From contig NC_052166.1 of NCBI RefSeq assembly GCF_902713615.1, positions 21,637,731 through 21,701,730 on the forward strand: a stretch of DNA of 64,000 nucleotides. Direction: 5' to 3'. The DNA comes from Scyliorhinus canicula (lineage: Eukaryota). Below the pieces are notes generated by a model. The model saw only the letters and a list, made by a program, of their open reading frames with translations. It had not been told where the DNA came from and made no database searches. Shown piece by piece: positions 5,438 through 52,544 of this stretch; position 1 is the stretch's first letter, and the number at the start of each line of letters is the position of its first letter. The position numbers and the translations under genes were made by a program.

Positions 5438-5913
5438 AATCCTGTTCATCCAGCAAAACCCAGAGACTAGTCCTTCAGCGAATGAATGAAAATCTTGGAG
5501 GGACATTTCTCTCCTAAACTGTTATTGATTCTGATTCCACCGCCAGAGCCAGGAAGAAGGTGAAACCATTTTGGTTTACAGCTTCTTTAAGACAATTAGC
5601 GAGATATTGTGAATTTGGTGTCACACTTGAATACTCTTCGAGACAAGTTGGGTTGTGGATTATGCAGTGAAGCTATTCTGAGGAAGCTGCTTATTGTAAG
5701 TCATTTAACTCCAAAAGCTGCTTTGGAAGTTGCCACGTCTGTAGAGTTTGCAACGAGTGAAGCTTCGCAGATGGGGGGCTGGAGTGAATGGATACCTCAA
5801 GGAACAAGGTTGCGAAGGTGCAACTATATCGCTGTTGTACACAGGTTAGATACTCAGCAGGAAAATGCTGGAATAAATCGAATATATGTAAAGACTGTGG
5901 CAAGAAAGACCAT

Positions 5914-6611
5914 GGGCGAAATTCTCCCCTACCCGGCGGGCCGGGGGGTCCCGGCGTAGCGGAGTGGCGCCATCCACTCCGGCGTTGGGCCTCCCCAAAG
6001 GTGCGGAATTCTCTGCACCTTTTGGGGCCAAGCCCTCACATTGAGGGGCTAGGACCGCGCCGGAGCGGTTGGCACCACACCGACTGGCGGCAAAACCGGC
6101 AACAACGGTGACGCCTGGCACCGGGGCTGGCCGAAAGGCCTTTGCCGGTTCGCGCATGCGCCGGTGCGTCAGCTGGGGGATTCTCTTCCACCTCCGCCAT
6201 GGTGGAGGCCGTGGCGGCGGCGGAAGAAAAAGAGTGCCCCCACGGTACTGGCCCACCGGCCGATCGGTGGGCCGCGATTGCGGGCCTGGTCACCGTGGGG
6301 GCACCCCCGGGGTCGATCGCCCCGCGCCCCCCCAGGACCCCGGGGGCCCGCTTGCGCCGCCGATCCTGCCGGCACAGAGGTGGTTCAAACCACGGCGGCG
6401 GGAGAGGCCTCTCAACGGTGGGACTTCGGCCCATCTGGGCCGGAGAATAACGGCAGCACAGAAATCCTTAGCCTCCCGCCGGCCCCCGCCATTCTCCGAG
6501 GCGGGCGGCGGGATTGGCAGCACGCCGACGTTTTGCGGGTGGGAGAATTCTGGACATGGCGGGGGCGGGATTTTCGGCAGCCACGGGCGATTCTCCGACC
6601 CCCAGCACCCC
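5914..6611. mobile_element. GC-rich non-autonomous element (MITE-like, possibly Harbinger-type) inserted in Gypsy gag
   Basis: Starts GGGCGAAATTCTCC; very CpG-rich; internal GGAGAAT/ATTCTCC motifs; splits the zinc knuckle between ..KKDH and IAKV.. Confidence 0.7.
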
Positions 6612-7928
6612 TATATTGCCAAAGTGGGCTGGGATCTGAAAACTACTTCTACACCAAGAAGAACAACACAAGTGAACAATCTCGTAGTGTCTATAAATTA
6701 GTGGATGAAGCTCAATATCACTCAAAAAGCAAGAGCTTAAGTTTGGTGTTTTCCCTATGCTCGGTGGTCATCAACATTTTTGGGCATGTCCAAAACTTTA
6801 CAGTCATGAAATTAAAGTGGAAAGGGGTACGGGTGCAGCAGTGGCACTCATATTTGAAACAATTTATCATCAAAAGCTGAAGCATCTACCTTTAAAACCT
6901 TTAAAAATGTGATCCTAAGAATGTACACTGAAGAGGTTGTGCCATTAAAAGCATGCATTATAGTGAAAGTAGAAGCAAATGGGCAGACAGCGAAGTTGCT
7001 TCTTCACATTGTCCATGGAAACTTTCCTTCTCTATTTGGCAGAGCAGGTTGGCTAAGATTAGACTTAACTGGGAAACAGTCAATCAATTAGTGAACTTGC
7101 AACAACTTCTGAAGTAGTGTGAGAAAGTGTTTGGCTTTATAACTGGAGTTGAGCTACAACTCAAAGCTAGAATCAGACCATATGCCATCAAACCTAAAGC
7201 TGAAGAAGAGCTAGAAAGATTAGTCAGGACAGGAGTCATTGAACGTATTGCTACAAGTGATTTGGTGACACCAATCGTAACGGGATGGCTCTGAGAATTT
7301 GTGGAAATTAAAAAATACTATTGACCCAGTTTTGTGCGTAGATAATTATCCACTACCGCTGATTGAAGACTTGTTTGCTGGATGTTCTGGAGGACAGAAA
7401 TTCAGTAAAATTTATTTTAAAAGGCACATCTGCAGTTGAATGTAGCTGCTGAATTGCAGCCACTACCCACCGTCGTAAGGCACAAAGTTCTCTTTCGTTA
7501 CAGAAGACTTCCTTTTGGAATAACATCTGCGCCTGCTCTTTTTCAATGGTCTACGGTTCATATTCTAAGTGGGTTGAATGGAGTGCAATGTTATTTAGGT
7601 GACATATGCATCACTGGTTCAAGTGGTTACTGATGCACATCCTGAGAGTTAAGAAGGCAAAGTTGTAACTTTTTCAAGTCATCCATAAATTACCTTGGCC
7701 ATATCATCGACAGAGATGGTTTACAAAAGAACCTGGTTCTGAGAAGCACCACATCCTCAAAATGTGACACAATAAAGTAGTTTTTCAGATTGATGGATTA
7801 ATATGGTCAATTTGTGTTGAATTAAGCAACACGATTGCAGCATTTACATACTTTGCTATGTGTCAAACAGACAATGCACTGATCAGAAGAATGCGAAAAT
7901 GCAATGAATTGAAAGAAGTTTAGAGGAC

Positions 7929-8280
7929 AGTAAGAAGACCAGGCTAAAATCCAATAGGTTAATTTGGAATCACTAGCTTTCGGAGCGTAGATCCTTCATC
8001 AGGTGAGCAAAGAGGCAGGTAATTAAATCTTTACAGGTCCAGAAGGTGCATCTCCAGTTGCACCATCTGGACCTGTAAAGATTTAATTACCTGCAGACCC
8101 GCATTCAATGTATCATCTTGCATCATTGGTTTTGTCTATATATGTGTTTGTGTAACCTACCTCTTCACTCACCTGATGAAGGAGCTACGCTCCAAAAGCT
8201 AGTGACCTGTTGGATTTTAACCTTGTATTGTAAGACTTCTTACTGTGCCCACTCCTGTCCAACGCCGGCATCTCCACATC
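7929..8280. mobile_element. Penelope-like inverted pseudo-LTR pair with hammerhead motifs
   Basis: Inverted arms. On - (7971-8007): CTGATGA-aggatctacgctcc-GAAA-gcta. On + (8168-8204) the copy has GAAA changed to AAAA. Imperfect TSD aagtttagag. Confidence 0.75.
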
Positions 8281-8744
8281 AAGTTTAGAGAGGTCAGAGC
8301 TGTTGGTTCACTATAATCGCAAGCTGAAGTTACAATTAGCTTGCGATGCCTCGCCCTATGGCGTTTATGCAGCTGTTTCACACATTATGCCTTGAGGAGA
8401 GGAACAATCAATACCATTTGCTTCACACACTCTTACTAGCACAGAAATGATTTGTGCTCATCCAGGAAAAAAAGGCTTTTGAGCATAAGATTTTGGTGTA
8501 AGAAGGTTGCACCATAACCTTTATCAGCCTCATTGACAGACCATCGACCCTTGATAACAATCTTTGGTCCAAAAAAAGGTTTACCATCTTTGGCAGCTAG
8601 TAGATTGCAAAGATGGTCATTTGATATTGTCAGCACACACTGTCCACTACCGCAAGCCCGAGCAGCATGAAAATGTTGATGCTGGTACAAGTCGAGCATG
8701 ACCCAGAAGAACATTTTGTCAATATTTTGCATTTGCCACTCGTG

Positions 8745-9646
8745 GATAGCGTACCTGTGAGTAAATTTGCAGATGACACTAAAGTCAGTGGAGTTGTGGA
8801 CATTGCGGAAGGATGTTATAAGTTACAGAGGGACATAGATAAGCTGCAGAGCTGGGCTGAGGTGGCAAATGGAGTTTAATGCAGAAAAGTGTGAGGTGAT
8901 TCATTTTGGAAGGAATAACAGGAAGATAGAGTACTGGGCTAATGGTAAGATTCTTGGCAGTGTGGATGAGCAGAGAGATATCGGTGTCCATGTACATAGA
9001 TCCCTGAGAGTTGCCACCCAGGTTGAGAGGGTTGTTAAGAAGGCGTATGGTGTGTTAGCTTTTATTGGTAGAGGGATTGAGTTTCGGAGCCATGAGGTCA
9101 TGATGCAGCTGTACAAAACTCTGGTGCGGCCGCATTTGGAGTATTGCGTGCAATTCTGGTCGCCGCATTATAGGAAAGATGTGGAAGCATTGGAAAGGGT
9201 GCAGAGGAGATTTACCAGAATGTTGCCTGGTATGGAGGGAAGATCTTATGAGGAAAGGCTGAGGGACTTGAGGCTGTTTTCGTTAGAGAGAAGAAGGTTA
9301 AGAGGTGACTTAATTGAGGCATACAAGATGATCAGAGGATTAGATAGGGTGGACAGTGAGAGCCTTTTTCCTCGGATGGTGATGTCTAGCACGAGGGGAC
9401 ATAGCTTTAAATTGAGGGGAGATAGATATAGGACAGATGTCAAGAGGTAGGTTCTTTACTCGGAGAGTAGTAAGGGCGTAGAATGCCCTGCCTGCAACAG
9501 TAGTAGACTCGCCAACACTAAGGGCATTCAAATGGTCATTGGATAGACATGTGGATGATAATGTTGATGGGCTTTAGAGTGGTTTCACAGGTCGGCGCAA
9601 CATTGAGGGCCGAAGGGCCTGTACTGCGCTGTAATGTTCTATGTTC
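8745..9646 (+). mobile_element. CR1/HER1 LINE 3' fragment (young)
   Basis: ORF 8869-9450 with LYKTLVRPHLEYCVQFWSP; KFADDTK upstream; gttctatgttc tail. Confidence 0.92.
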
Positions 9647-11009
9647 ATCTCCAGTTCAAAGATTATACAAGAACTGATCCAGTGATGGGGAAGGTGATGG
9701 ATCTGCTCCAGAAAGGAATGCTGTCAGTCATTCATAGGAAAAGTCCAGACCTTGGACCCTACATCACATGAAGACTTGAGTTGAAATTGTAGAATAGAGT
9801 TCTATTGTGGGGAATCTGTGTGGTTATTCTTCCGTGCTTGCGTAATAGAGTCCTTCACCAACTGCATGATGGCCATCCTGGTATCGTGAGGATGAAGGAA
9901 TTAGAACATTAGTGGCCAGGATTAGATGCTCAAATTGAAGAGAAAGTTGGACAATGCCAATCTTGTGCAAAATTAAGCAACAGTCCTCCATTACATCTGT
10001 GGGAATGGACTACTCAGCCATGGCAGAGAATACACATTGGTTATGCTGATCCACTGGAGGGACACATGTTCTTCGTGATTGTGGACTTGCACTCAATGGT
10101 CAGAATTTGTGATAATGAAGTCAACGACGACTGACTGAGCAGACCATTGAAAATCTAGACTACATATTTGCAAGATTTAGAACACTGGAGCAGATTGTCA
10201 GTGATAATAGTAAGCAGTTCAATTTGAAGGACTGTAAGAAGTCTTACAACACCAGGTTAAAGTCCAACATGTTTGTTTCAAACACTAGCTTTCGGAGCAC
10301 TGCTCCTTCCTCAGGTGAATGAAGAGGTAGGTTCCAGAAACACATATATAGACAAAGTCAAAGATGCAGGCAATCCTTTGAATGCGAGCATTTCCAGGTA
10401 ATTAAGTTTTTACAGATCCAGAGAGAGGGGTAATCCCAGGTTAAAGAGGTGTGAATTGTCTCAAGACACGCCAGTTGGTAGGATTTCACAAACCCAGGCC
10501 AGATGGTGGGGGGTGAATGTAATGCGACATGAATCCAAGGTCCCGGTTGAGGCGGTACTCGTGTGTGGAACTTGGCTTTAAGTTTCTGCTCGGCGATTCT
10601 GTCGCGCATCATGAAGGCTGCCTTGGAGAACACTTACCCGAAGATCGGGGGCTGAATGCTCTTGACTGCTGAAGTGTTCCCCGACTGGAAGGGAACATTC
10701 CTGCCTGGCGATTGTCTGATGACATAATTAAAAACAAAACCTTAGCTCTGGTTGTCTAGTTTGTTTTCTCTAATCCCAACTATGAGTCAACAATCAGTGA
10801 TAATAGCCCACCCTCCTCAAGCTGCGATAAGAGTCACCAGGCAACAATTCAATGCTATAACTCTAACTTTTAATATGGCAGTAAATGTAATCATGCTAGC
10901 TAGATATCAGTATCCCAAAACAGCATATTAGCAAAATTTCTCTAACTGATTTGCATATTAAGGCTGAGTGGGCAAGGGGTCATTTATCTTTCCCGTTTTT
11001 ACTACACAC

Positions 11010-11090
11010 CGAATTGAACAGCTCCTTGGTCAGGCCCAGATAGTTGTGAAATGCCAGGAAGGTCACTCTCTGCAAGCGCACCAAGATTAT
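11010..11090 (-). pseudogene. Orphan PNPLA6/PNPLA7-type exon with native intron flanks, inside a Penelope-like insertion
   Basis: On -: gtaac..tgtgctttctcttcttctcag|[27 protein letters not shown]|gtgtgt; 81 nt, phase 0-0; matches the NTE family [24 protein letters not shown]. Confidence 0.88.
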
Positions 11091-11415
11091 CTGAGAAGAA
11101 GAGAAAGCACAGTTACTCTCCGGGTCCCATCAATGTTGGTAACATTTCTTAAGAGCACACTGGTAGATGCGGAGTTAAATCCACGCGAACTCTGAAAACG
11201 TGTCCAACGATACAATTACAGATTTCCTTCTTCCGAATTGGAGTTGTAAATGGAAATCATGCCTGGAGCTACATAAGAACACAAATTCTAACGATGAACT
11301 CAGAAAGAAGTCTTACAACACCATGTTAAAGACCAACAGGTTTGTTTCCAATCACTAGCTCAGGTTCACCTGAGGAAGGAGCAGTGCTCCGAAAGCTAGT
11401 GATTTGAAACAAACC

Positions 11416-11750
11416 TAGAATCATAGAATTTACAGTGCAGAAGGAGACCATTTGGCCCATCGAGTCTGCACCGGCTCTTGGAAAGGGCACCCTACCCAAG
11501 CCCACATCTCCACTCTATCCCCATAACCCAGTAATCCTACCCAGCATTAAGGGCAATTTTGGACACTAAGGGCAATTTACCTAACCACATCTTTGGACTG
11601 TGGGAGGAAACCGGAACACCTGGAGGAAACCCACGTACACACTGGGAGAACGTGCAGACTCTGCACAGACAGTGAACCAAGCCGGGAATCGAACCTGGGA
11701 CCCTGGAGCTGTGAAGCAATTGTGCTAACCACTATGCTACCATGCTGCCC
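11416..11750 (-). mobile_element. HE1-type V-SINE nested in a PLE pseudo-LTR
   Basis: GGGCAGCATGG head, B-box GGTTCGATTCC, V-domain, ttctatg tail. Confidence 0.9.
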
Positions 11751-12265
11751 TGTTGCTTTTTAACCTGGTGTTGTAAGACTTCTTACTGTGCTCACCCCAG
11801 TCCAACGCATACATCGCCACATCACTTTGTAGGAGTTTGAGGACTAGAAAAGTCTCCATGTCATCCAGCAATGAATGGATTGGCTAAGTGCTTTATGCAA
11901 TCATCAAAGCATTCTATCAAAGTGTTGAAACACCAGGGGATATTGCGAGAATATATTCCTAATGCTGTTCAAGAGGAAACTACAAACCGTTTGATTTGTT
12001 AACTCCACCTGACACTTCAGAGATTGTCAAACAACAAACACAAATTGCTAGGATGGAGAAAATCTCTTAAAAAGCAAGTATTCAACCAGGGAGAAAGAGT
12101 TCTAGCGAAGAATCACCATGAAAAAATAGGCACCAGCAATGATCCTAGCAAAGACTGTTCTGATATCATACACCATACAGATGGATGACAAGAGTTTGGC
12201 GACATCATACTGATCAGTTACTTGCTGCACAAGGTAAGTTTGCAGACAGTTCTCAAGATGTTCTA

Positions 12266-12930
12266 CAATGTAATGTAATGCAACATGAATCCCAGGTCCC
12301 GGTTGAGGCAGCACACGTGTGCGGAACTTGGCTATAAGTTTCTGCTTGGCGATTCTGCATTGTCGCGCATCCTGAAGGCCTCCATGGAGAACGCTTACCC
12401 GGAGATCAGAGGTAGAATGCCTTTGACTGCTGAAGTGTTCTCCGACTGGAAGGGAACATTCCTGTCTGGTGATTGTCGCACGATGTCCGTTCATTCGTTG
12501 TCGCAGCGTCTGCATGATGTCGCCAATGTACTACGCTTCGGGACATCCTTTCCTGCAGCATAGGAGGTAGACAACGTTGGCCGAGTCGCATGAGTATGTA
12601 CACATGAGTGCGGCCTGGGATTCATGTCACATTACATTCACCCCCCACCATCTGGCCTGGGCTTGCGAAATCTGACCAACTGTCCTGGCTTGAGACGATT
12701 CACACCTCTTTAACCTGGGGTTACCTCTATCTCTGGATCTGTAAAGACTTAATCACCTGCTAATGCTCGCATTCTCTATAGATATATGTTTCTGGAACAT
12801 ACCTCTTCATTCACCTGAGGAAGGAGCAGTACTCCGAAAGCTAGTGTTTGAAACAAACCTGTTGGACTTTAACCTGGTGTTGTAAGACTTCTTACTGTGC
12901 TCACTCCAGTCCAATGCCGGCATCTCCACA
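12266..12930. mobile_element. Penelope-like element: GIY-YIG fragment (-) plus pseudo-LTR with hammerhead (+)
   Basis: QTLRQRMNGHR..LPVGEHFS...KLIAKF (GIY-YIG C-terminus); hammerhead CTGAGGA..GAAAgcta at 12810-12846. Confidence 0.85.
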
Positions 12931-13355
12931 CTAATGAAGTACAGGAGAGGGGTGTTGGAGTTTGGGAGTACATTCTTGCTGGTTCTGTGTCATGTGATGT
13001 GACATCAGCAGACTGTTTGCACAGGTTTTTGGCAAATCACCACCTTGATAAAGCTCTCATCATGTTTAACAAGAATTCAGAGTGTGGGCATCTCCATACC
13101 GTTTCTTTTTGCAAGAACAAAGAAATTTAACATGTGTATTTTCATTATTTTGATTATTTGAAACGGCATTATAATGCCTTTTGTAACACTTGCCATTCAC
13201 ATTTGAGAAAGCTGCTTTGCTAAACAATTAGAATGTTTTTCTGTATTAATGGATTTTACCTGTCTAGATTGGAGTTAAATGGCAACTTTCTTCTTTCAGT
13301 TGCTGTAATTCTTCTGAATGATCACACTGGATCTTGGAAGGAGTGATTGAGTGAC

Positions 13356-13496
13356 ATGGAGGCTCGAAGCACAGCTCGAACCCTGCAGGTGGTGGATACA
13401 GAGTATAGTGCCGATGCTGTAGAATGGTGCCCCATCGACACATGGCATCATGTACTGACTTGTGGTACTTACCAACTAAAGGATCCCAAGGAGAAG
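13356..13496 (+). CDS. DPH7: DPH7 (WDR85, diphthine methyl ester hydrolase) coding exon 1
   Basis: gacATGG Kozak; encodes MEARSTARTLQVVDTEYSADAVEWCPIDTWHHVLTCGTYQLKDPKEK, matching the DPH7 N-terminus (human LQTVDTELTADSVEWCP..LACGTYQL). Donor AAG|gtacag, phase 0. Upstream acceptor ttctttcag ends at 13299. Confidence 0.95.
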
Positions 13497-13509
13497 GTAC
13501 AGTACCATT

Positions 13510-15162
13510 GAAGTTTCAGTCGGTGATTACTTTGGGGATAGCGATCACAATTCCGTAAGTTTTAGAATACTCATGGACAAAGACGAGAGTGGTCCTAAAG
13601 GAAGAGTGCTAAATTGGGGAAAGGCCAACTATAACAAAATTCGGCAGGAGCTCGGGAATGTGGATTGGGAGCAGCTGTTTAAGGGTAAATCCACATTTGA
13701 AATGTGGGAGTCTTTTAAGGAAAGGTTGATTAGAGTGCAGGACAGACATGTCCCTGTGAAAATGAGAGATAGAACTGGCAAGATTAGGGAACCATGGATG
13801 ACGGGTGGAATTGTGAGACTTGCTAAGATGAAAAAGGAAGCATACATAAGATCGAGGCGACTCAAAACTGATGAAGCTTTGAGGGAATATCTGGAAAATA
13901 GGACAAATCTCAAAAGCGCAATAAAGAGGGCTAAAAGGGGTCATGAAATATCTTTGGCTAACAGGGTTAAGGAAAATCCCAAAGCCTTTTATTCGTATAT
14001 AAGGAGCAAAGGGTAACTAGAGAAAGGATTGGCCCACTCAAAGACAAAAGAGGGAATTTATGCGTGGAGTCAGAGGAAATGAGTGAGATTCTTAATGAGT
14101 ACTTTGCATCGGTATTCACCAAGGAGAGGGACATGACGGAGGTTGAAGCTAGAGATGGATGTTTAAATACTCTAGGTTATGTCGCCTTAAGGAAGGAGGG
14201 GGAGGTTTTGGGTATTCTAAAAGGCATTAAGGTGGACAAGTCCCCAGGACCGGATGGGATCTATCCCAGGTTACTGAGGGAAGCGAGGGACGAAATAGCT
14301 GGGGCTTCAACAGATATCTTTGCAGCATCCTTGAGCACGGATGAGGTCCCGGAGGACTGGAGAATTGCTAATGTTGTCCCTTTGTTTAAGAAGGGTAGCA
14401 GGGATAATCCAGGGAATTATAGACCTGTGAGCTTGACGTCAGTGGTAGGCAAACTGTTGGAGAAGATACTGAGGGATAGGATCTATTCACATTTGGACCC
14501 TGAAGGTGGCAACGCAGGTCGATAGAGTGGTCGAGAAGGCATACAGCATGCTTGCCTTCATCGGACGGGGTATTGAGTACAAGAGTCGGCAGGTCATGTT
14601 ACAGTTGTGTATGACTTTGGTTAGGCCACATTTGGAATACTGTGTGCAATTCTGGTCGCCACATTACCAGAAGGATGTGGATGCTTTAGAGAGGGTGCAG
14701 AGGAGGTTCACCAGGATGTTGCCTGGTATGGAGGGTGCTAGCTATGAAAAAAGGTTGAGTAGATTAGGATTGTTTTTGTTGGAAAGACGGAGGTTGAGGG
14801 GGGACCTGATTGAGGTCTACAAAATTGAGAGGTATGGACAGGGTGGATAGCAACAAGCTATGGGGTGTCAATTACAAGGGGTCACGATTTCAAGGTGAGA
14901 GGGAGAAAGTTTAAGGGAGATGTGCGTGGAAAGTTTTTTACGCAGAGGGTGGTGGTTGCCTGGAATGCTTTGCCAGCGGAGGAGGTAGAGGTGGGCATGA
15001 TAGCATCATTTAAGATGCATCTGAACAGATATATGAACGGCCGGGGAACAGAGAGAAGTAGAACCCTGGAAAATAGGCAACAGGTTTAGATAAAGGATCT
15101 GGATCGGCGCAGGCTGGGAGGGCCGAAGGGCCTGTTCCTGTGCTGTAATTTTCTTTGTTCTT
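13510..15162 (+). mobile_element. CR1/HER1 LINE with internal deletion
   Basis: SDHNSV.., KSPGPDGIYPRLLRE, PGNYRPVSLTS, then a jump at about 14496 to VRPHLEYCVQFWSP; ttctttgttct tail. Confidence 0.92.
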
Positions 15163-15260
15163 CATTCATTAGAAGGGAACACAGTTGATGCAGAGTAGGC
15201 CCCTCTTTAATTTTCACTGAGTCTGATGTAACTTTTTAAGACAAGAGTGGACTCTAGTTT

Positions 15261-15628
15261 TGATGTGTTGGGTGCTCTGGATCCGTGAAACACATACAGG
15301 CCACCAACACTTAAAATAGTACAACACTATTTTATTAAACTATAAACTGCTGAACATACTATTACTATGGGTTACACGATGTTAGATTAACTAAAGACCT
15401 GTGCGTGTCCTAACCAGTCAAATCACTCAGAACATGGTGAGGATCTGTGCTGTCAGCTGTAAGCTCTTGTGCTTCTGAAAGGCTGCATCCCGAATGAGCA
15501 GGAAAAGTGATGCCCTCTGTCTTTATAGTGAGTGTGTTCTAACTGGTGATTGGCTGCGGTGTTATGCGTGTTGATTGGTCCTACTGTATGTCCATCAGTG
15601 TGTGTCTGCACTGGTGTATATTATGACA
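15261..15628 (-). mobile_element. Solo LTR
   Basis: TG..CA termini; 5-bp TSD agttt at 15256-15260 and 15629-15633; AATAAA on -. Confidence 0.8.
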
Positions 15629-15998
15629 AGTTTCTAATCAACCAAAACAGGAGTTACCCTAATGGGAACTGATCGGTATTGATTAGGAAATTTTTTGTTT
15701 CAATTCCGACCACAGCAGGATAGTAGGAGGAATACCACAGTTGACCGGATAATTCCTGAGCTGGGGAGAATAATAAACCAACTTGATTTCAACTATCCTG
15801 ATTGTTGCCCACCGACCTAGTGCATTGTGTCCATCGAGATGATTGTTGAAGGAAGGATTGGCTCAGCCATGAGTTCAAATACCTCCCTCAAAAACACTGG
15901 TTTACATTGGAGAGCTGTCTTGAATTTGGTATTGTTTAACAATCTTGTATTTGACTCATTGGGGTTTTTGACTATTTGCTTTAACTTTGACTTTTTAG

Positions 15999-16138
15999 GG
16001 TGCCGGAGACTCTGAAATCAATGAGCCCCATGTGAGACAGGGCCGTCTTTATCTCTACTGTTTCAATCAGGATCGGCTTTATTCTCCATTAACAGAAGTA
16101 CAGCGGATTGAAATGCCTGCAATATTAGATCTCAAATG
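15999..16138 (+). CDS. DPH7: DPH7 coding exon 2
   Basis: ctttttag|[46 protein letters not shown](W)|gtaagc; 140 nt, phase 0 to 2. Confidence 0.95.
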
Positions 16139-16430
16139 GTAAGCAATAGAGATGCGGGTGGGGGGGGGGTCACATGGAGCGATCCATTATTCTAGGTTAA
16201 AGGATCAAATCTCAGCCTCACAGTGACTCTTGCTGGAAGGATGGTGTATGGGTGATGGATTACAACAGAATTGGGTGCTCAACAATGAGACCCCACACTG
16301 TGGCCCAACAGCTTGCTCTTACTGCCCAGTCTCTGAAGAATGGGGAGTTGGATGAGATACAAGTTGGTTGGCAGCACATTAAAAGAATTGCCCAGAATTA
16401 ATCAGTGCTTTCTGGAGAGGTTGAGACAAA

Positions 16431-16790
16431 TAGAATAGAACATAGAACATAGAACAGTACAGCACAGAACAGGCCCTTCGGCCCTCAATGTTGTGCCGAG
16501 CCATGATCACCCTACTCAAACCCACGTATCCACCCTATACCCGTAACCCAACAACCCCCCCCCCCTTAACCTTACTTTTATTAGGACACTACGGGCAATT
16601 TAGCATGGCCAATCCACCTAACCCGCACATCTTTGGACTGTGGGAGGAAACCGGAGCACCCGGAGGAAACCCACGCACACAGGGGGAGGACGTGCAGACT
16701 CCACACAGACAGTGACCCAGCCGGGAATCGAACCTGGGACCCTGGAGCTGTGAAGCATTTATGCTAACCACCATGCTACCCTGCTGCCCC
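16431..16790 (-). mobile_element. HE1 SINE, young
   Basis: Full head, V-domain and HER1-type (gttctat)n tail; nearly identical to 44719-45058 and 62419-62769. Confidence 0.93.
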
Positions 16791-16854
16791 AAATGGGTGG
16801 AGTGAGCTTGGTTTTATTAGCGAACAGTAATGAAATTCATCAAAGAAAAAAGGA

Positions 16855-17150
16855 CAGACTTGCATCTGGTGGTCGTGCAAAACTCTATATAAATGCATCA
16901 ATTTGCATTACAGCTAATGAAGTAATTTTTGAAGTGTAGTCACTGTTATAATGTAGGAAATGCAGCAGCCAGCGTATACACAGCAAACTTCCACAAACAC
17001 CATTTTTTTGAGGGGGGGCTGGTGTAACTTCCTTGCTCTCTTTTTGAAGTAGTGCCATGGAATCTTTTACATCCACTCAAGCAGGCAGATGGGGACCTCA
17101 GTTCAATGCCACCTCCAGAGGGCAGCATTCCCTCACTGCTGCACTGGAGT
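16855..17150 (-). mobile_element. Deu-domain SINE remnant (SacSINE1/AmnSINE1-like)
   Basis: Reverse complement contains ggctgctgcatttcctacattataacagtgactacacttcaaaa, the Deu-SINE 3' region. Confidence 0.7.
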
Positions 17151-18268
17151 CAGCTTCGTGGGAGTTACATGAAGTAAAGTCATTGGGAATGCAGAATGGT
17201 TCTTGGCACATGGCGTCTATCAAAGCGTTGTATTTTTCTTGCTTGACACAGTACTGTAGTTTGAGACGATTACATTTTCTAACACTTTCCACAGAGGAAA
17301 TGGTGGTTGTTTATTGAATGCTTTATTTAGTGGAGGGAAGGTTTACTAACAGGGAGGCTCACACCTGAGCAGGTGATAGCTGGTTTGACTGGCAGCTCAA
17401 CTGGACAAAATGTGTGTACACATGCTGGAAAGAGTCAAAGTTTGGGTTCTCTATTCCCGCTAAATAAGGTTGGAGAGGTAGTCTGTAAGAGCTGGGAAGG
17501 GTGTGCGGGTTAGAGGGAGGATTTTCTCTGAAAGATTAATGTTGATCTGTCTCACAGAAGTTATCAGTAAGACAAGTGTATTTTACCACATAACAGCAGT
17601 GTGATGTACTTAGTAACTTCTGTGTTATGGGTACAAACCAGGCTAATATTCACTCTAAATGTTAACTTGCAGATAAGCGAATGAACAGTTAAATCACTTT
17701 TATAATCTGTTCTCCTCTTACTAAACCGTTCACTTGCCTTTTGGAAAATTAGGGAAATAGATATGGGACAACATGAGATTGTAGTATCCAGTTAACCAAA
17801 CAAATGGCTTTCATTGTTATGATCTCTGAGCCCTGTCATTGTATGACTAGATGTTGGGCATTAAAGATAAACTGGAACAACAATTTATATTTATGTCTTT
17901 GATATAATAAATGTCTCATGGTGTTGTGGAGGTAAATAAGACACCAAAAACAAGGAGATATTCGGGCACAAAAGCAGAAAATGCTGGAAAAACGCATCAA
18001 GTCTGGCAGTATCTGTGGAGAGAGATACAGTTAATGTTTCACAATATGACCCCTCTTCAGAGCTTTTCAGGCAGAGAGGTGATTTAAGGAACATTGTGAA
18101 GGAAGAGGGAGCGGTGCAAATACCGAGGAGAAATTCCCTACTCGGGGCCTGGGCAGCCGAAGGTGTGGTCATCAATTGTGGAGCAATACAAATTGGGAAT
18201 CCACAGGAGTTGAGAATTCTGAGTGCATATATCTTGGAAGGTTGTGGGACGGGGAGAATACCAAGTCA

Positions 18269-18435
18269 GATGCTGTTTAGCACAGGGCTAAATCGCTGGC
18301 TTTGAAAGCAGACCAAGGCAGGCCAACAGCACGGTTCAATTCCCATAACAGCCTCCCCGAACAGGCGCCGGAATGTGAATTGAAGTCTACTCGTGACAAT
18401 AAGCGATTTTCATTTTTCATTCATTTCATTTTTCA
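18269..18435 (+). mobile_element. Short tRNA-like SINE with (TTTCA)n tail
   Basis: Same family as about 5208-5388 (-), 30689-30872 (-) and 53895-54007 (3' part). Confidence 0.8.
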
Positions 18436-18870
18436 TATAGAGGGAGATGGCAGGAAAGCCATGGAGGGATTTGAAAAATGATGAGAATTTAAAGATTGGC
18501 ACCCAGTCAGGCAATAATGAGCACAGGGCGAACTAGACATGGTGCAAGTAAAGACAAACAGCAGAGTTTTGAATGATCTAAAGTTCACAAAGGGTAAAAT
18601 GTGGGAGGCCAGCCAGGAATTTATTTCAATCGTCAAGTCAGAGGAAACAAAAGCATGAATGTGGGTTTCAGCAGCAGATGAGCTGAGGCAGAGGCAAATA
18701 AGAATAGTTACAAATGTGGAAATAGACGATCTTAATGATGCCATGAATATGAAGTTGCAAGTTCATCTTTAAGTCAAATGACACCAAGATTACGCCTGGT
18801 TGAGTCACTGACAGTTGTCAGGGTAAAGGGTGGAGTTGGTAGCTAGGGAAACAATGGCTTCAGTCTCCCC
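18436..18870 (-). mobile_element. L2 LINE fragment
   Basis: AAETHIHAFVSS resembles the L2 ORF2 motif AETLIHAFVTSRLDY. Confidence 0.7.
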
Positions 18871-19449
18871 AGTCTGATGGTAAGGATTGGCTTACAATAG
18901 AGATCAGTGAAGATCAGTGGTATGAACGAAAGGACTGTCTTGTGCAGACATGAAATTTGTAATAGCCAATTCGTAGCCTCAGCGCAGGAACTCTGACCAG
19001 ATGAGGAAGACTCTACCTTTAACCCAATGATGCCGCTCAGTTGTAGTATTTATACTGCTGTCCTAAAGGTAGATAACTCAGCATAGATTGCAGACCTAAC
19101 CTGGGTTTTTTTATGATCTGCATATTTGACGTGTGTACCTATCATTTGAGGAAGCACGAGGAAGTAGTTGAGGCTAAAATAATGTGTTAATTTGAAGAAG
19201 GAATTGGATATAGCTCTTGAACTGAGGGATATGGGGAAGGCAGGATCAGGGTATTGAACTTGATGATCAGCCAGGATCATAATGAATAGTGGAGCAGGCT
19301 CAAAGGGCCAAATGGCTCATCCTGCTTCTGTTTTCTATCTATGTTTCTATGTATGATTCTTAATGCCTGGAATTTAGGTTAACCTTAACTTTGAGTGACT
19401 GGTTTTCTCTCTGGTGAAATATTTGAGTATAATCTAAACTAATTTGCAG

Positions 19450-19537
19450 GTGTCATGTACCAGTGGCAGGGCATCCTGTACTTGGCATCGCAAATGCTGA
19501 GGGAAATCTGGAGCTGTGTAATCTGACACATTGTGAG
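19450..19537 (+). CDS. DPH7: DPH7 coding exon 3
   Basis: ttgcag|(W)CHVPVAGHPVLGIANAEGNLELCNLTHCE|gtatgt; 88 nt, phase 2 to 0; matches human WCHIPVAGHALLG. Confidence 0.95.
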
Positions 19538-20224
19538 GTATGTGGATTCATTTTTCTATTGGATTATTAAGAAAACGTTTGAGATGCTGATCACCTGTAT
19601 ATATTTTATATTCTGTCCATGTAATGTTGCAATTTGCATCACAATGCATTTAAATTACACTTAACTGAGTTGAACTTTTGTTCTAATATCAGTATAGGGA
19701 TGTGGCTTTTGTCTGCAGTTCTTCACGCACTGTTCCTAATTGTGAAAAAAACAGGAGTGTGAAACCATTATCAGTGATTCGGAATAGAGAAATAGCTAAA
19801 TGTGCAATTTATAATGAAATCCTGCCTGGAATATGGTCGTATCCTCAAGCTCTTGTGCAAAAATAAAGTATGCACAAACGGAATTGGTGAATTTTCATGT
19901 AACTAATGTGCTGTTCGTTGATGCTCAATCTTTTAGTCCTGCATAGTTCTTTTTAAATATCGACTTGATGCTCATTCTGCAGATTTGTAGGTCACATCAA
20001 TGTCACTTTGGAGTTGGCATTGCATATAGGACATGTATAGTTGGAAGAGAATACATGATTGGGCAGTTTCTACAGGTTCTCTTAACAGTGGAAAAGAGCA
20101 GGTCGGGTGCTGATCTGATGTCATGTTAAATCATGGAAGAACGTTAGAGGGAGAACAATGGCAAATAAAGCTGGATGTAGAATGACTGGGTAACTAATCA
20201 GGCTGTTGCTTTCAAACGTTTTAC

Positions 20225-20785
20225 AAGAGGAAATCATGCTTGATATATCTACTGGAACTCTTTGAGGATCTAACTGGTAGACTTGATGAGGGGGAGCCAA
20301 TGGATGTGGTTTATTTGGACTTTAGAAGGCTTTCGAAAAGGTCCGACATAAGAGATTAATGTGTAAAATTAAAGCACATGGGATTAGGGATATTTGGATG
20401 GATAGAAAATTGGTTGGCAGGAAACAGTAGGAATAAACAGGTCTTTTTCCAAGTGGAAGGCAGTGACTATTGGTGTAGTACAGGATCAGTGCGAGGACCC
20501 CAGCTATTTACAGTATCTATTAATGATTTAGATGAGGGAACTAAATGTTATCCCTCCAAATTTGCAGATGGCATAAAGCTGGGTGGGAGATGAGCTGTGA
20601 GGAGGATGCAGAGACGCTTGAGTGTGAATTGGACAAGCTGAGTGAGTGGGCAAATGCATGGCAGATGCAGTATTAAGTGGATGAATGAGAGGTTATCCAC
20701 TTTGGTAGCAAAAACAGGAAGGCAGGTTATCACTTGAATGGCTATAGATTGTGAGATGGAATGTGCAACAAGACCTGGATGTATT
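20225..20785 (+). mobile_element. CR1 LINE RT fragment (old)
   Basis: GSVRGPQLFT..INDLDEGTKC..KFADGIKLGG. Confidence 0.85.
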
Positions 20786-21245
20786 GCTGGGTGTAACTGC
20801 ACAAACCTTTCACGTGCCCACTTTCATGACATTCTTGTAACATAATTGAGATGAACTTCTAAAATTTCAGGGGGCACATGGCTTATACAGTGCTGCTTTA
20901 AAGAATTGCAGTTCCAGTTCCAATTAGCCTTTACACTTCTGAGTTAGAGATAGGGATGGCGAAGCAATCCTGGTTTCTGTTCCAAATCACCATCTACTTC
21001 CCTGACTGAAATGTGTGAAGGTTATGGATATTTGGTAAGCATAGAAATGGACTTGCCTGTAATACTCCCTGAAAAGCTGCAGTTACCATCGATCCGCGCA
21101 CATGATACTGACACTCACGAACATGTATCCCAATTATGAGTTGATGCTTTCAGGGAAGGGGAGAACATTGGTGAAAAAGACAAGTGGAGCTGTAAATGTT
21201 AAAATTGAGTTATTTGTGGCTCATCATGATCTTTTCTTTCAGTAG

Positions 21246-21337
21246 AAAAACAGCTGCTCCTTAGAACCAATGTGCAGTGTTTGCATAGGCCCAGATTGCC
21301 TTGCTCTGTCCCTGGATTGGTCAACTGGAAGAGAACA
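21246..21337 (+). CDS. DPH7: DPH7 coding exon 4
   Basis: cttttctttcagtag|[30 protein letters not shown]|gtaagt; 92 nt, phase 0 to 2; contains [11 protein letters not shown]. The distal AG of CAGTAG is needed for an open frame. Confidence 0.93.
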
Positions 21338-21842
21338 GTAAGTCTTTATTCATGCATTTGTTTTCCTTTTGGTGAGTTTTGTTGTATTTAATATTACAGC
21401 ACAAGCAGACTATTTGATCCATTGAGTTTATGCCACCTCTTTCATGGGGAAATCCAGTTAGTCCCAATTCTATTCTTGTTCCCCATAGCCCTGCAGTTTC
21501 TCCTTTTGTTTATTTATCCAATTTCCTTTTGAAGGCTTGCATTGAATCGGTTTCTACCAGCCCATCAATTAATGCATTCACAAATTTTTGTTATATTAGA
21601 AAAAACTTTTCTTCATGTTGCCTCTTTCATCCTACCCCATGAATCTCCTGGAGCTGACACACAAACTAATTTCAGGGTTCTACTATTACATGATGAAACC
21701 TGGCTACTGGAAGGCATACAAGAATGGTCTGAGGTGACATATAAGAATGTATGAAAAATTTTGAATGGTGAGAACAAATAACTGGTTGACTTGCTGTCTC
21801 CTAGTGCTGTGATACCTGTTTCATAATTAAGACTGTTCCTAC

Positions 21843-22434
21843 TGTCATGGGAGTGTCCCTTTAAGAAATGTTTTTGTCTTATCACATGGCTTCAGTGATG
21901 TCATTATGTGGTGGAGCTGGGCTGTGGCTCTGGGTTTTTACTTTCGGTTTGAGTTGGGACCTGGCTGTGCTCTGAGTTTTACTTTCGCTTTGAGTTTGAA
22001 CTGGTTTGTACAGCACAGGTTGAAAAAGAAGGTTTTTTAAAAGCTGTTTGCAGACTGCTTGATAACTTGAAAAGAAATAATTGCTTTCTGGAAGGAATTC
22101 AAACCTGATGTGTCAATACCAGGTCTTGAGTGCTGTGTGCTGGGCCGCACCTTTCTAGTTTATGGGATCTTGTTATTAAATTGGAACAGCTTAAGGGGGA
22201 AATGTATTAAGGGTTATTCATAGAGTACTGTAGCTGTGGGTATTTTTGTTGGTAGTTAATAAAAATGCTCACTAAATTTGTAGCATAAACATTTTTGATT
22301 AAAAGTGCTTAAGGCCTCTGTTGAATAACACCTGAAAGGCAGACCCTTGTGCTCATCGTAACCAAAATAAACAGTAGTAGGTCAGGTGATCTCCTTGATA
22401 TACTTTGGAGTTTTCTAAACCCTGGCCCATAACA
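21843..22434 (+). mobile_element. Solo LTR
   Basis: TGTCATG..CATAACA termini; near-TSD ctac/ttac; AATAAA at about 22366. Confidence 0.75.
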
Positions 22435-23326
22435 TTACCCTCCTTGATCCATATAACCTTCAGGGAGAGGTGAATAAAAATTATGGCTGGATGGAAAAAT
22501 TCAGCTCCAAACCTACACTCCAATTCTCATTACACCTACTCCAGGACCATGACTTGTGTTGCTTGGTGCCTACCTATTGTTATGATGTGATTTCTGTTCC
22601 AGGTCATACTTGGCCCAATGTCCTTTAAAGGTAGACCCTGAATCTGCATTCACTGCACTGACTAGCAACTTGTTCCATCAGGTCTACTATTATCTGGGAA
22701 AAGAAGGACTGCCTAACATCCAACCTAGTTCCACCCATGTGTAACTTCTATAATTTCCACAATCTATTCCATTCATTATTTTATAGAAGTTGATCAAATT
22801 GCTCTCAAGTCTTCTTTTTCTCAAGTACACAGATCCAGCTTTTTAAGCCAACCAATAAGCTACGCTGCCAGTTTGGTGAAGGTGACTCTGGCAGCTAGTT
22901 GATCTTTACTCTCTATCTGATTATATGTGTTGATAAATAGAAAAAGTTTTGCACGTCCCAGAATTGACATCCATCACCTTGATTAACATGAAAATTTCAC
23001 CCAAAGATCAGTATTTTTAGAAAGTGGGATTAAAATGTGCGGCTAGTTTCTTTTTTATATCCTTTGGCCAGCACAGACACGATCGGCTGAATGGCCTCTT
23101 TCTGCTGCGTTGTATTTCTTTGGTTCTAGGGTAGATTTTGTGATCAGTTTCTCCATTTTAGAATTCCATCCCCATTAAACATGCCAATTCACAGAGTCAC
23201 TTTGTTAATATTTAGTGAAATGTATTTTCTTATTGTCTCTTATGTTTTCTAGTCTTGAAGCTGAATCTTCCTCTGTGTAAAATATAACAGTACTAATGTT
23301 ATGGTCTTTTTCCTTCTCTGCTGCAG

Positions 23327-23490
23327 GAAACCACTGAAGATCATTAGTAGTGACTCAAAGGGCTGCCTGAGCCTTCTGTCGGTGGACGGTTGTCGATCAG
23401 CACTAGAGGTGGTCTCTCGCTGGAAGGCGCATGACTTTGAGGCTTGGATTGCAGCTTTCAATTACTGGAACACAGACGTTGTTTATTCAG
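23327..23490 (+). CDS. DPH7: DPH7 coding exon 5
   Basis: ctgcag|(Q)[12 protein letters not shown]...[23 protein letters not shown]|gtagcc; 164 nt, phase 2 to 1. Confidence 0.95.
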
Positions 23491-23642
23491 GTAGCCTTGT
23501 CAAACCTTTCTGAGCAGCTGACTGGCAAAAGACAAGCCAAATGTGCTCTTTATCGGTGCGTGAATTGTGGCTGTTTCTACTCTATTAGAAGTCTGTTACC
23601 CTAACTCTTATTTTGGTTTTCTCCCCTCTAATCCGTGCTGAT

Positions 23643-23978
23643 TAGCACGGTAGCATAGTGGATAGCACAGTTGCTTCACAGCTCCAGGGTCCCAGGTTCG
23701 ATTCCCGGCTGGGTCACTGTCTGTGCGGAATCTGCACGTTCTCCCCGTGTCTGCGTGGGTTTCCTCCGGGTGCTCCGGTTTCCTCCCACAGTCCAAACGT
23801 GCGGGTTAGGTGGATTGGCCATGCTAAATTGCCCTTAGTGTCCAAAAAGGGTAAGTGGGGGTTACTAGGTTACGGGGATGGGGTATTACATGGGCTTGAG
23901 TCGGGTATTCTTTGGAAGGGCCGGTGCAGACTCGATGGGCCAAATGGCCTCTTCCTGCACTGTAAATTCTATGATCTA
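23643..23978 (+). mobile_element. HE1-type V-SINE
   Basis: Head, V-domain, ctgtaaattctatg tail. Confidence 0.9.
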
Positions 23979-52380: not shown

Positions 52381-52544
52381 GTAAGAAGTCTTACAACACC
52401 AGGTTAAAGTCCAACATGGCATTAACCCCAGGAAGGAGCAGTGCTCCGAAAGCTAGTATTTGAAACAAACCTGTTGGACTTTAACCTGGTATTGTAAGAC
52501 TTCTTACTGTGCTCACCCCAGTCCAATGCCGGCATCTCCACATC
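52381..52544. mobile_element. Minimal fold-back Penelope pseudo-LTR element (hammerhead core truncated)
   Basis: Same family as 40423-40629; imperfect TSD acaaa(t)atctgt. Confidence 0.8.

Follow-up and report, generated by a model that had tools for sequence, protein, structure and literature searches.

A Penelope-like insert in a shark genome encloses an intron-flanked exon copied from a PNPLA7-type gene

The window analyzed here, a stretch of 64,000 nucleotides of Scyliorhinus canicula (NC_052166.1), consists of repeat-rich vertebrate DNA. DPH7-type WD40 exons were located at 13368-32016 on the plus strand by tblastn with an opossum read-through model, and a 468-aa WD40 gene is annotated in assembly GCA_902713615.2 as ending at about 41885. 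MRPL41 follows at 45781-46185 on the minus strand (Pfam MRP-L27). Head-to-head with MRPL41, a 1349-aa gene of the NTE family with the domains cNMP_binding, NTE_Ploop and Patatin starts at about 53231 on the plus strand according to the same annotation, i.e., about 41 kb downstream of the insert described below. Two opossum entries labelled as PNPLA7 isoforms (P0063 and P0142) start with DPH7-type WD40 exons and run into PNPLA7. They are NCBI read-through models across DPH7, MRPL41 and PNPLA7, and gene order and orientation are conserved.

The first DPH7 coding exon found lies about 1.5 kb downstream of the insert, and the exon captured in the insert is on the opposite strand. Since this coding exon is downstream of the insert, an antisense position within DPH7 is not supported. 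At 5800-6700, a block rich in CpG was observed, with long open frames in either strand. This block could be a promoter or first exon, either of DPH7 or of a divergent gene, and its nature decides whether the insert sits in a 5'-UTR intron.

A decayed LTR-retrotransposon pol on the plus strand surrounds the insert. Its domains were matched below threshold in the right order, namely RVT_1 at 7421-7630, RT_RNaseH_2 at 8234-8392 and Integrase_H2C2 at 9913-9975. Pfam analysis of the integrase flanks returned nothing besides the weak Integrase_H2C2 match, PDB sequence searches with two flank ORFs were empty, and a word-index protein search for intact integrase copies spanning the insertion site yielded no candidate. 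The view that the insert interrupts a Gypsy integrase thus agrees with the order of the pol domains, the Pfam matches being sub-threshold throughout. The duplicated target site together with the weak domain matches gives a faint indication that the flanking integrase is contiguous across the insert; an empty site was not observed among the contigs.

The insert itself (10232-11822) is a single unit flanked on both sides by a 12-bp target-site duplication (TSD). The left copy, caatttgaagga (10220-10231), and the right copy, cactttgtagga (11823-11834), are identical at 10 of 12 positions. The TSD measures 13 bp if an ambiguous t is counted, and the empirical chance of such a match at fixed positions was about 4e-4. 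Read on the minus strand from 11822 to 10232, the parts follow each other as an inverted arm of a pseudo-LTR (pLTR), a direct pLTR arm, 589 nt of non-repeat DNA, the end of a Penelope-like element (PLE) ORF and a 3' pLTR. According to the alignments, the last two form a 5'-truncated PLE (10232-10711, minus strand), which comprises the end of a putative GIY-YIG ORF (about 10516-10711) and a complete 3' pLTR that terminates at 10232, the canonical 'short' terminus.

The non-repeat DNA, also on the minus strand, contains an 81-nt copy of a PNPLA7-type exon (11010-11090), which was identified by protein matches, exon boundaries and donor contigs. Downstream of the exon lies an intron piece of 298 nt, probably PNPLA7-derived (10712-11009), low in copy number and homologous to the donor contigs. 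Upstream of the exon lies another such intron piece of 210 nt (11091-11300) with a polypyrimidine tract and an AG, assigned from its sequence and from contigs. This host segment had been placed at 10718-11304; its presence was confirmed, while its bounds were corrected to about 10712-11300 from the loose ends of the donor contigs.

The inner direct pLTR arm (11301-11365, minus strand) was delimited by arm alignment. Its canonical short terminus adjoins the host DNA, and a deletion of about 21 nt takes out helix II of its hammerhead motif. The inverted pLTR arm (11366-11822, plus strand), with a 36-nt 'tail' outermost, was recognized by arm alignment and motif search and is split by a tRNA-derived SINE on the minus strand (about 11418-11757), identified by its sequence and a contig depth of more than 1e6. 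Contigs of other PLE copies skip 11417-11758, and the SINE at 11418-11757 is a later insertion into the inverted arm. The anatomy given in the original prediction was correct as far as it went, and the inverted arm with its tail and SINE (11366-11822) was missing from it.

Published PLEs are laid out with direct and inverted pLTRs, an optional tail of 30-40 bp and a short TSD (PMC3846280). The same combination of direct and inverted pLTR arms, tail and short TSD was found here, with TSDs of 10-12 bp in four units. Besides the composite insert, these are PLE fold-back units at 40423-40629, 52383-52544 and 7926-8280, which are flanked by perfect or near-perfect 10-12-bp TSDs. In each fold-back unit, one terminus is 'short' (gacttcttac plus 0-2 nt), and the opposite terminus is 'long', being placed 36-37 nt further out. 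As revealed by the arm alignment, the composite insert ends at the same short and long termini as the three other units. Thus, the claim of a TSD-bounded PLE insertion is borne out by the TSD match and by termini typical of the family. The end of the inner arm beside the host DNA also lies at most about 3 nt from the short terminus used by the three other units.

The point where the direct and inverted arms of the insert join is close to the 5' edge of the hammerhead, which is also the case in 2 of the 3 other units, and 11301-11822 alone constitutes a complete standard fold-back unit. A second duplication was looked for at 10232/11300 and at 11301/11822, and none was present. Both host/PLE junctions show microhomology of 2-5 nt, i.e., ATC at the left and G-TCA, inside the tail region, at the right. 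The right junction is spanned by DNA contig X2 (11155-11354) with 0 mismatches. An RNA-library contig from a separate study matches 11187-11300 with 0 differences and extends past 11300, the position up to which it was compared. No contig bridging the left junction (10711/10712) was present among those shown from the sequencing runs.

The 196-nt PLE ORF end in the insert (10516-10711) shows 86% identity to that of a neighboring copy (12272-12472). In the Atlas, the ORF at 12272-12472 obtained a score of 0.95 with GIY-YIG clusters, and Pfam analysis of the PLE ORF pieces gave no match.

Some further observations concern the PLE family in the window. The copy at 12272-12930 resides in the same pol remnant as the insert and is a head-to-head pair, composed of an ORF end at 12472-12272 on the minus strand and of an ORF end, pLTR and tail at 12614-12930 on the plus strand. 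No TSD was detectable around 12272-12930, and its left end at 12272 is non-canonical, which suggests deletion or rearrangement. The units at 40423-40629 and 52383-52544 are minimal fold-back units of 160-210 nt with 12-bp TSDs, and within the window such minimal units outnumber PLE copies with remaining ORF sequence. The unit at 7926-8280 is longer, with the TSD aagtttagag and a near-perfect palindrome at its center. This palindrome explains the matches to mir-3912 and mir-1 that Rfam gave below threshold for both strands at 8012-8097.

The pLTRs carry a hammerhead core, CUGAGGA-A-GGAGC(AGU)GCUCC-GAAA-GCUA, at 10286-10314 on the minus strand in the 3' pLTR and at 11370-11398 on the plus strand in the inverted arm. 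Its elements are CUGAGGA, one additional A, a helix II of 5 bp that starts with G-C, then GAAA, and finally the palindrome AGCU with an A behind it. Five copies of the core were counted in the window, while none was expected by chance. The 3' pLTR and the inverted arm each retain an intact core, and that of the inner arm is broken. According to published criteria, the minimal hammerheads of metazoan PLEs lack their own helix III and probably work as dimers. The core agrees with these published criteria for minimal hammerheads and is, on the basis of its sequence, a putative ribozyme. In an Rfam search of 8000-14000 at E<=1, no hammerhead was reported and only mir-3912 and mir-1 appeared below threshold; folding and cofolding of the pLTR by minimum free energy did not reproduce a hammerhead fold. 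The 'intact hammerhead' predicted for the pLTR is hence supported as a core motif and was not recovered as an Rfam match.

The captured exon (11090-11010, minus strand) is an open 81-nt exon of phase 0-0, preceded by AG and followed by GT. Its peptide shows 85% identity to residues 294-320 in a PNPLA6 protein of 1360 aa, which carries three cNMP_binding domains, NTE_Ploop and Patatin according to Pfam. A search with the exon peptide yielded 125 matches to the NTE family at E<=1e-3, the best being 4e-8. Together with the domain architecture of the long matches, this confirmed the assignment of the peptide to the NTE family (PNPLA6/7). Many matches are single-exon ORFs on vertebrate contigs that start after cag and end before gt at the same residues; thus, the boundaries are those of a real exon, and the exon with its splice signals is as had been predicted. 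The sense of the exon is the same as that of both direct PLE parts, and the predicted co-orientation of exon and intron flanks with the PLE applies to both of them. No other PNPLA exon was found in the window on either strand by tblastn with PNPLA6/7 proteins, also under relaxed settings. Since further PNPLA exons were absent in this tblastn search, a relic inverted duplicate of a PNPLA gene and a real minus-strand gene were both rejected as candidates.

A second copy of the host segment, as expected from the original prediction, was found in the same species. The summed contig depth was 2-14 over 10736-11267, as compared to 1e4-1e6 for the PLE and the SINE, while the pol remnant reached values from a few hundred to a few thousand. 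Among the DNA contigs of the species, two versions of the host segment were present, one of which is identical to the window. The second version is homologous from about 10711 to about 11299 and then continues into TTTACATGA... at the left and ...GGTCATT at the right. These flanks are non-PLE, and a further 100-250 nt match nothing in 9900-12150. In a related species, a single version of the segment with the same non-PLE flanks was found. Since the related species shares the donor flanks, the donor locus is ancestral and the window copy derived. The window copy is probably absent from the related species, whose contigs are low-coverage. Copy-specific alleles were found in two DNA samples.

The second copy belongs to a spliced, expressed gene of the PNPLA7 type. 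An RNA contig of 4754 nt aligns with precisely the exon (11009-11094) and differs from it at two positions (11049 and 11084); both differences recur in the DNA contigs of the second version. At these positions the donor encodes a conserved M and L, while the copy encodes L (11084, M>L) and F (11049, L>F). The next exon of the donor mRNA reads ESQAIPLVSL, as in human and opossum PNPLA7 clusters. In comparison, the mRNA of the paralog shows 14 differences and continues with QESQPSRLA, as does a shark protein type that bears the label '7a' and is close to PNPLA6.

No second copy was found in the window by blastn with the host segment and its retrotransposon flanks, and a word-index protein search for ORFs of the donor exon gave no candidate. 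The donor exon falls outside the window and lies 53 kb or more from the copy. With the start of the NTE-family gene at about 53231, a local donor is probable. The proposal that the neighboring PNPLA7 served as donor is supported in that an NTE-family gene begins about 41 kb downstream, the donor exon itself being beyond the window. Based on synteny and paralog type, this neighbor is very probably the donor, and the donor gene is probably no more than a few hundred kb away along the same chromosome.

Copy and donor diverge by roughly 3% in the left part and roughly 8% in the right part, figures that are approximate because contigs of two similar copies may be mosaics. In the left part, the copy is closer to the donor of its own species than to the related species. 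DNA contig X1 (10732-11144) combines the donor left flank and donor alleles at 11049-11134 with window alleles in between. This mosaic is either a collapsed de Bruijn path or the product of gene conversion between donor and copy.

Exon shuffling had been proposed as a candidate, with inclusion of the exon in RNA as a point to check. In one RNA run, each contig covering the exon carried alleles of the donor or of the paralog and none carried those of the copy. RNA matching the copy was unspliced and of low depth in this single run, which makes for a weak test. Thus, the captured exon shows no sign of use in the RNA run examined, and exon shuffling is only a potential here. The two amino-acid-altering changes within 81 nt fit neutral drift.

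In our view, the chimera was probably built by one PLE integration event with template changes. A single event is favored because one family-typical TSD encloses all parts without a second duplication, because the host piece is co-oriented with both direct PLE parts, and because the inner arm ends about 3 nt from the canonical short start site. PLEs studied in vitro extend both target strands, and their reverse transcription starts at two adjacent internal sites, the spacing of which corresponds to the 'tail', with a primer that need not match the RNA (PMC11167929). In the proposed sequence of steps, the PLE endonuclease would have made a staggered cut in the old pol remnant, giving rise to the 12-bp TSD. 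Reverse transcription primed by the left nick would have begun at the canonical short site and proceeded along 480 nt of PLE RNA. The template may then have been left at a microhomology of 2-3 nt (ATC), and 589 nt of unspliced PNPLA7 would have been copied in sense orientation, most likely from the nascent pre-mRNA of the neighboring gene, with single-stranded DNA also conceivable as template. The extended 3' end would have been re-used as primer at the canonical start site of the PLE RNA, yielding the inner direct arm. Finally, this arm would have been joined to the inverted arm, the latter having started at the 'long' site with the right nick as primer, and the captured exon would have drifted afterwards by two amino-acid changes. 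The terminus of the inner arm is expected if a PLE particle positions its own RNA on a host-extended 3' end regardless of the primer sequence. We infer this order of template switches, as well as RNA rather than DNA as the template. A donor that is probably local suits a physically near template; the unspliced sequence and the nearby donor are equally compatible with pre-mRNA and with single-stranded DNA. The more specific version, in which the PLE reverse transcriptase used nascent unspliced pre-mRNA from the same chromosome stretch at the target and then re-initiated on the host 3' end, is put forward tentatively as one possibility.

Other origins of the chimera were considered. The original prediction held that two PLE insertions had flanked the exon inside PNPLA7 and that a read-through transcript had been retrotransposed as one unit. 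This would account for both the canonical terminus of the inner arm and the 5'-truncated PLE across the host DNA, and Arkhipova 2013 read pLTR-framed host genes as mobilized in trans via their flanking pLTRs (PMC3846280). However, the donor contigs, obtained from two DNA samples and one RNA sample as well as from the related species, enter shared non-PLE sequence; the PLE flanks predicted for the donor are thus missing at either breakpoint. Only two copies were evident by depth, and no master copy was seen, so that copying of the exon together with two intronic PLE pieces appears quite improbable. Repair of a break in an earlier PLE with nearby PNPLA7 DNA, by MMBIR/FoSTeS or end-joining capture, is somewhat easier to reconcile with the data, but we still regard it as unlikely. 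It would fit the unspliced state of the segment, a donor that is probably a few hundred kb away at most on the same chromosome, and the 2-5-nt microhomology at both junctions. Repair would require a prior unusual structure, though, and a random break would rarely fall about 3 nt from the canonical start terminus of reverse transcription, where the right junction is found; the agreement in sense orientation between the host segment and the PLE parts also speaks against it.

Two successive insertions, i.e., of the fold-back unit 11301-11822 with its TSD and subsequently of a chimeric cDNA between the left TSD and this unit, appear very unlikely. The second cut would have to fall exactly at the boundary between element and TSD, and the second insertion would lack a TSD of its own. 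No duplication exists at 10232/11300, while three other units possess 10-12-bp TSDs (12272-12930 has none). These points outweigh the completeness of 11301-11822 as a standard fold-back unit and the reported recognition of PLE sequence by the PLE endonuclease (PMC11167929). An assembly artefact or a genuine exon of a minus-strand gene is the most improbable of the origins considered. For the left junction, which is bridged by no contig shown, an artefact may be suspected, but the right junction is crossed by DNA contig X2 (11155-11354) without mismatch and is reached without mismatch by the RNA-library contig of the other study (compared to 11300), and the copy-specific alleles occur in two DNA samples. 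A minus-strand gene is contradicted by the lack of further PNPLA exons in the window on either strand and of any RNA contig with the exon alleles of the copy.

For a single PLE integration with template changes, precedents and parallels can be named. In the rotifer Adineta vaga, Penelope-mediated mobilization of intron-containing host genes has been described (Arkhipova, Yushenova, Rodriguez 2013, Mob DNA 4:19; PMC3846280). In that study, non-coding DNA was likewise found in a frame of two direct pLTRs plus an inverted one, together with a TSD, and PLEs were considered able, unlike other retroelements, to spread intron-containing genes (PMC3846280). The shark insert resembles the rotifer case in that intron-containing host DNA lies between direct pLTRs, with an adjacent inverted pLTR and one short TSD, and in the optional tail of 30-40 bp. 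In contrast, a whole NRPS gene was moved in A. vaga, whereas here a 589-nt fragment with one exon was captured; internal PLE sequence was absent there, whereas 196 nt of PLE ORF end were kept here. Moreover, the source locus was not identified in A. vaga, whereas here the donor was identified, without PLE flanks, and the host is a vertebrate. Since the identified donor lacks PLE flanks, assembly during reverse transcription is favored over trans-mobilization of a pre-framed unit. In the literature searched, the rotifer case was the only precedent found for PLE-framed intron-containing host DNA. Thus, the present case is a vertebrate example of known PLE capture, and its new aspect is an identified, probably neighboring donor without PLE flanks.

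LINE-1 elements reportedly form chimeric retrocopies by template switching, such as U6-L1 and mRNA-L1 chimeras. As in these chimeras, the reverse transcriptase would have swapped element RNA for host RNA during target-primed reverse transcription, and the product is sense-oriented inside one TSD. While LINE-1 chimeras involve abundant mature RNAs, with the host part at the end, the host part here is unspliced and probably from a neighboring gene, the reverse transcriptase would be that of a PLE, and the return to PLE RNA would have taken place at a canonical start. Exon shuffling by L1 3'-transduction is also said to occur, and there too a retroelement carries a host exon to a new locus. Transduction of this kind needs an element beside the donor exon and read-through; this arrangement was looked for here, and the donor lacked it. 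The parallel with PLEs in vitro (PMC11167929) lies in the extension of both strands, in the two start sites and in a primer that need not match the RNA, which would explain the short and long termini as well as the restart on a host-derived 3' end. That work used a lizard element, and template switching to host RNA was outside its scope (Frangieh et al. 2024, Mob DNA 15:12; PMC11167929).

Since donor and copy are both visible, the case bears on how such chimeras form, and it points to template switching during integration and not to read-through of pre-flanking elements. The two start sites of reverse transcription and the extension of both strands, as seen in vitro, appear here as genomic marks. 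If re-initiation on the host 3' end did occur, the insert would be an in vivo record of primer-independent internal initiation by a PLE. Copying of a nearby pre-mRNA would in addition represent a proximity-driven route for the spread of splice-ready exons and their intron flanks by PLEs to sites near the source genes in vertebrates. If such events are frequent in PLE-rich shark genomes, they would call for caution when 'retrocopies' are counted by intron absence, and they would supply introns with scattered fragments of exon size that are competent for splicing.
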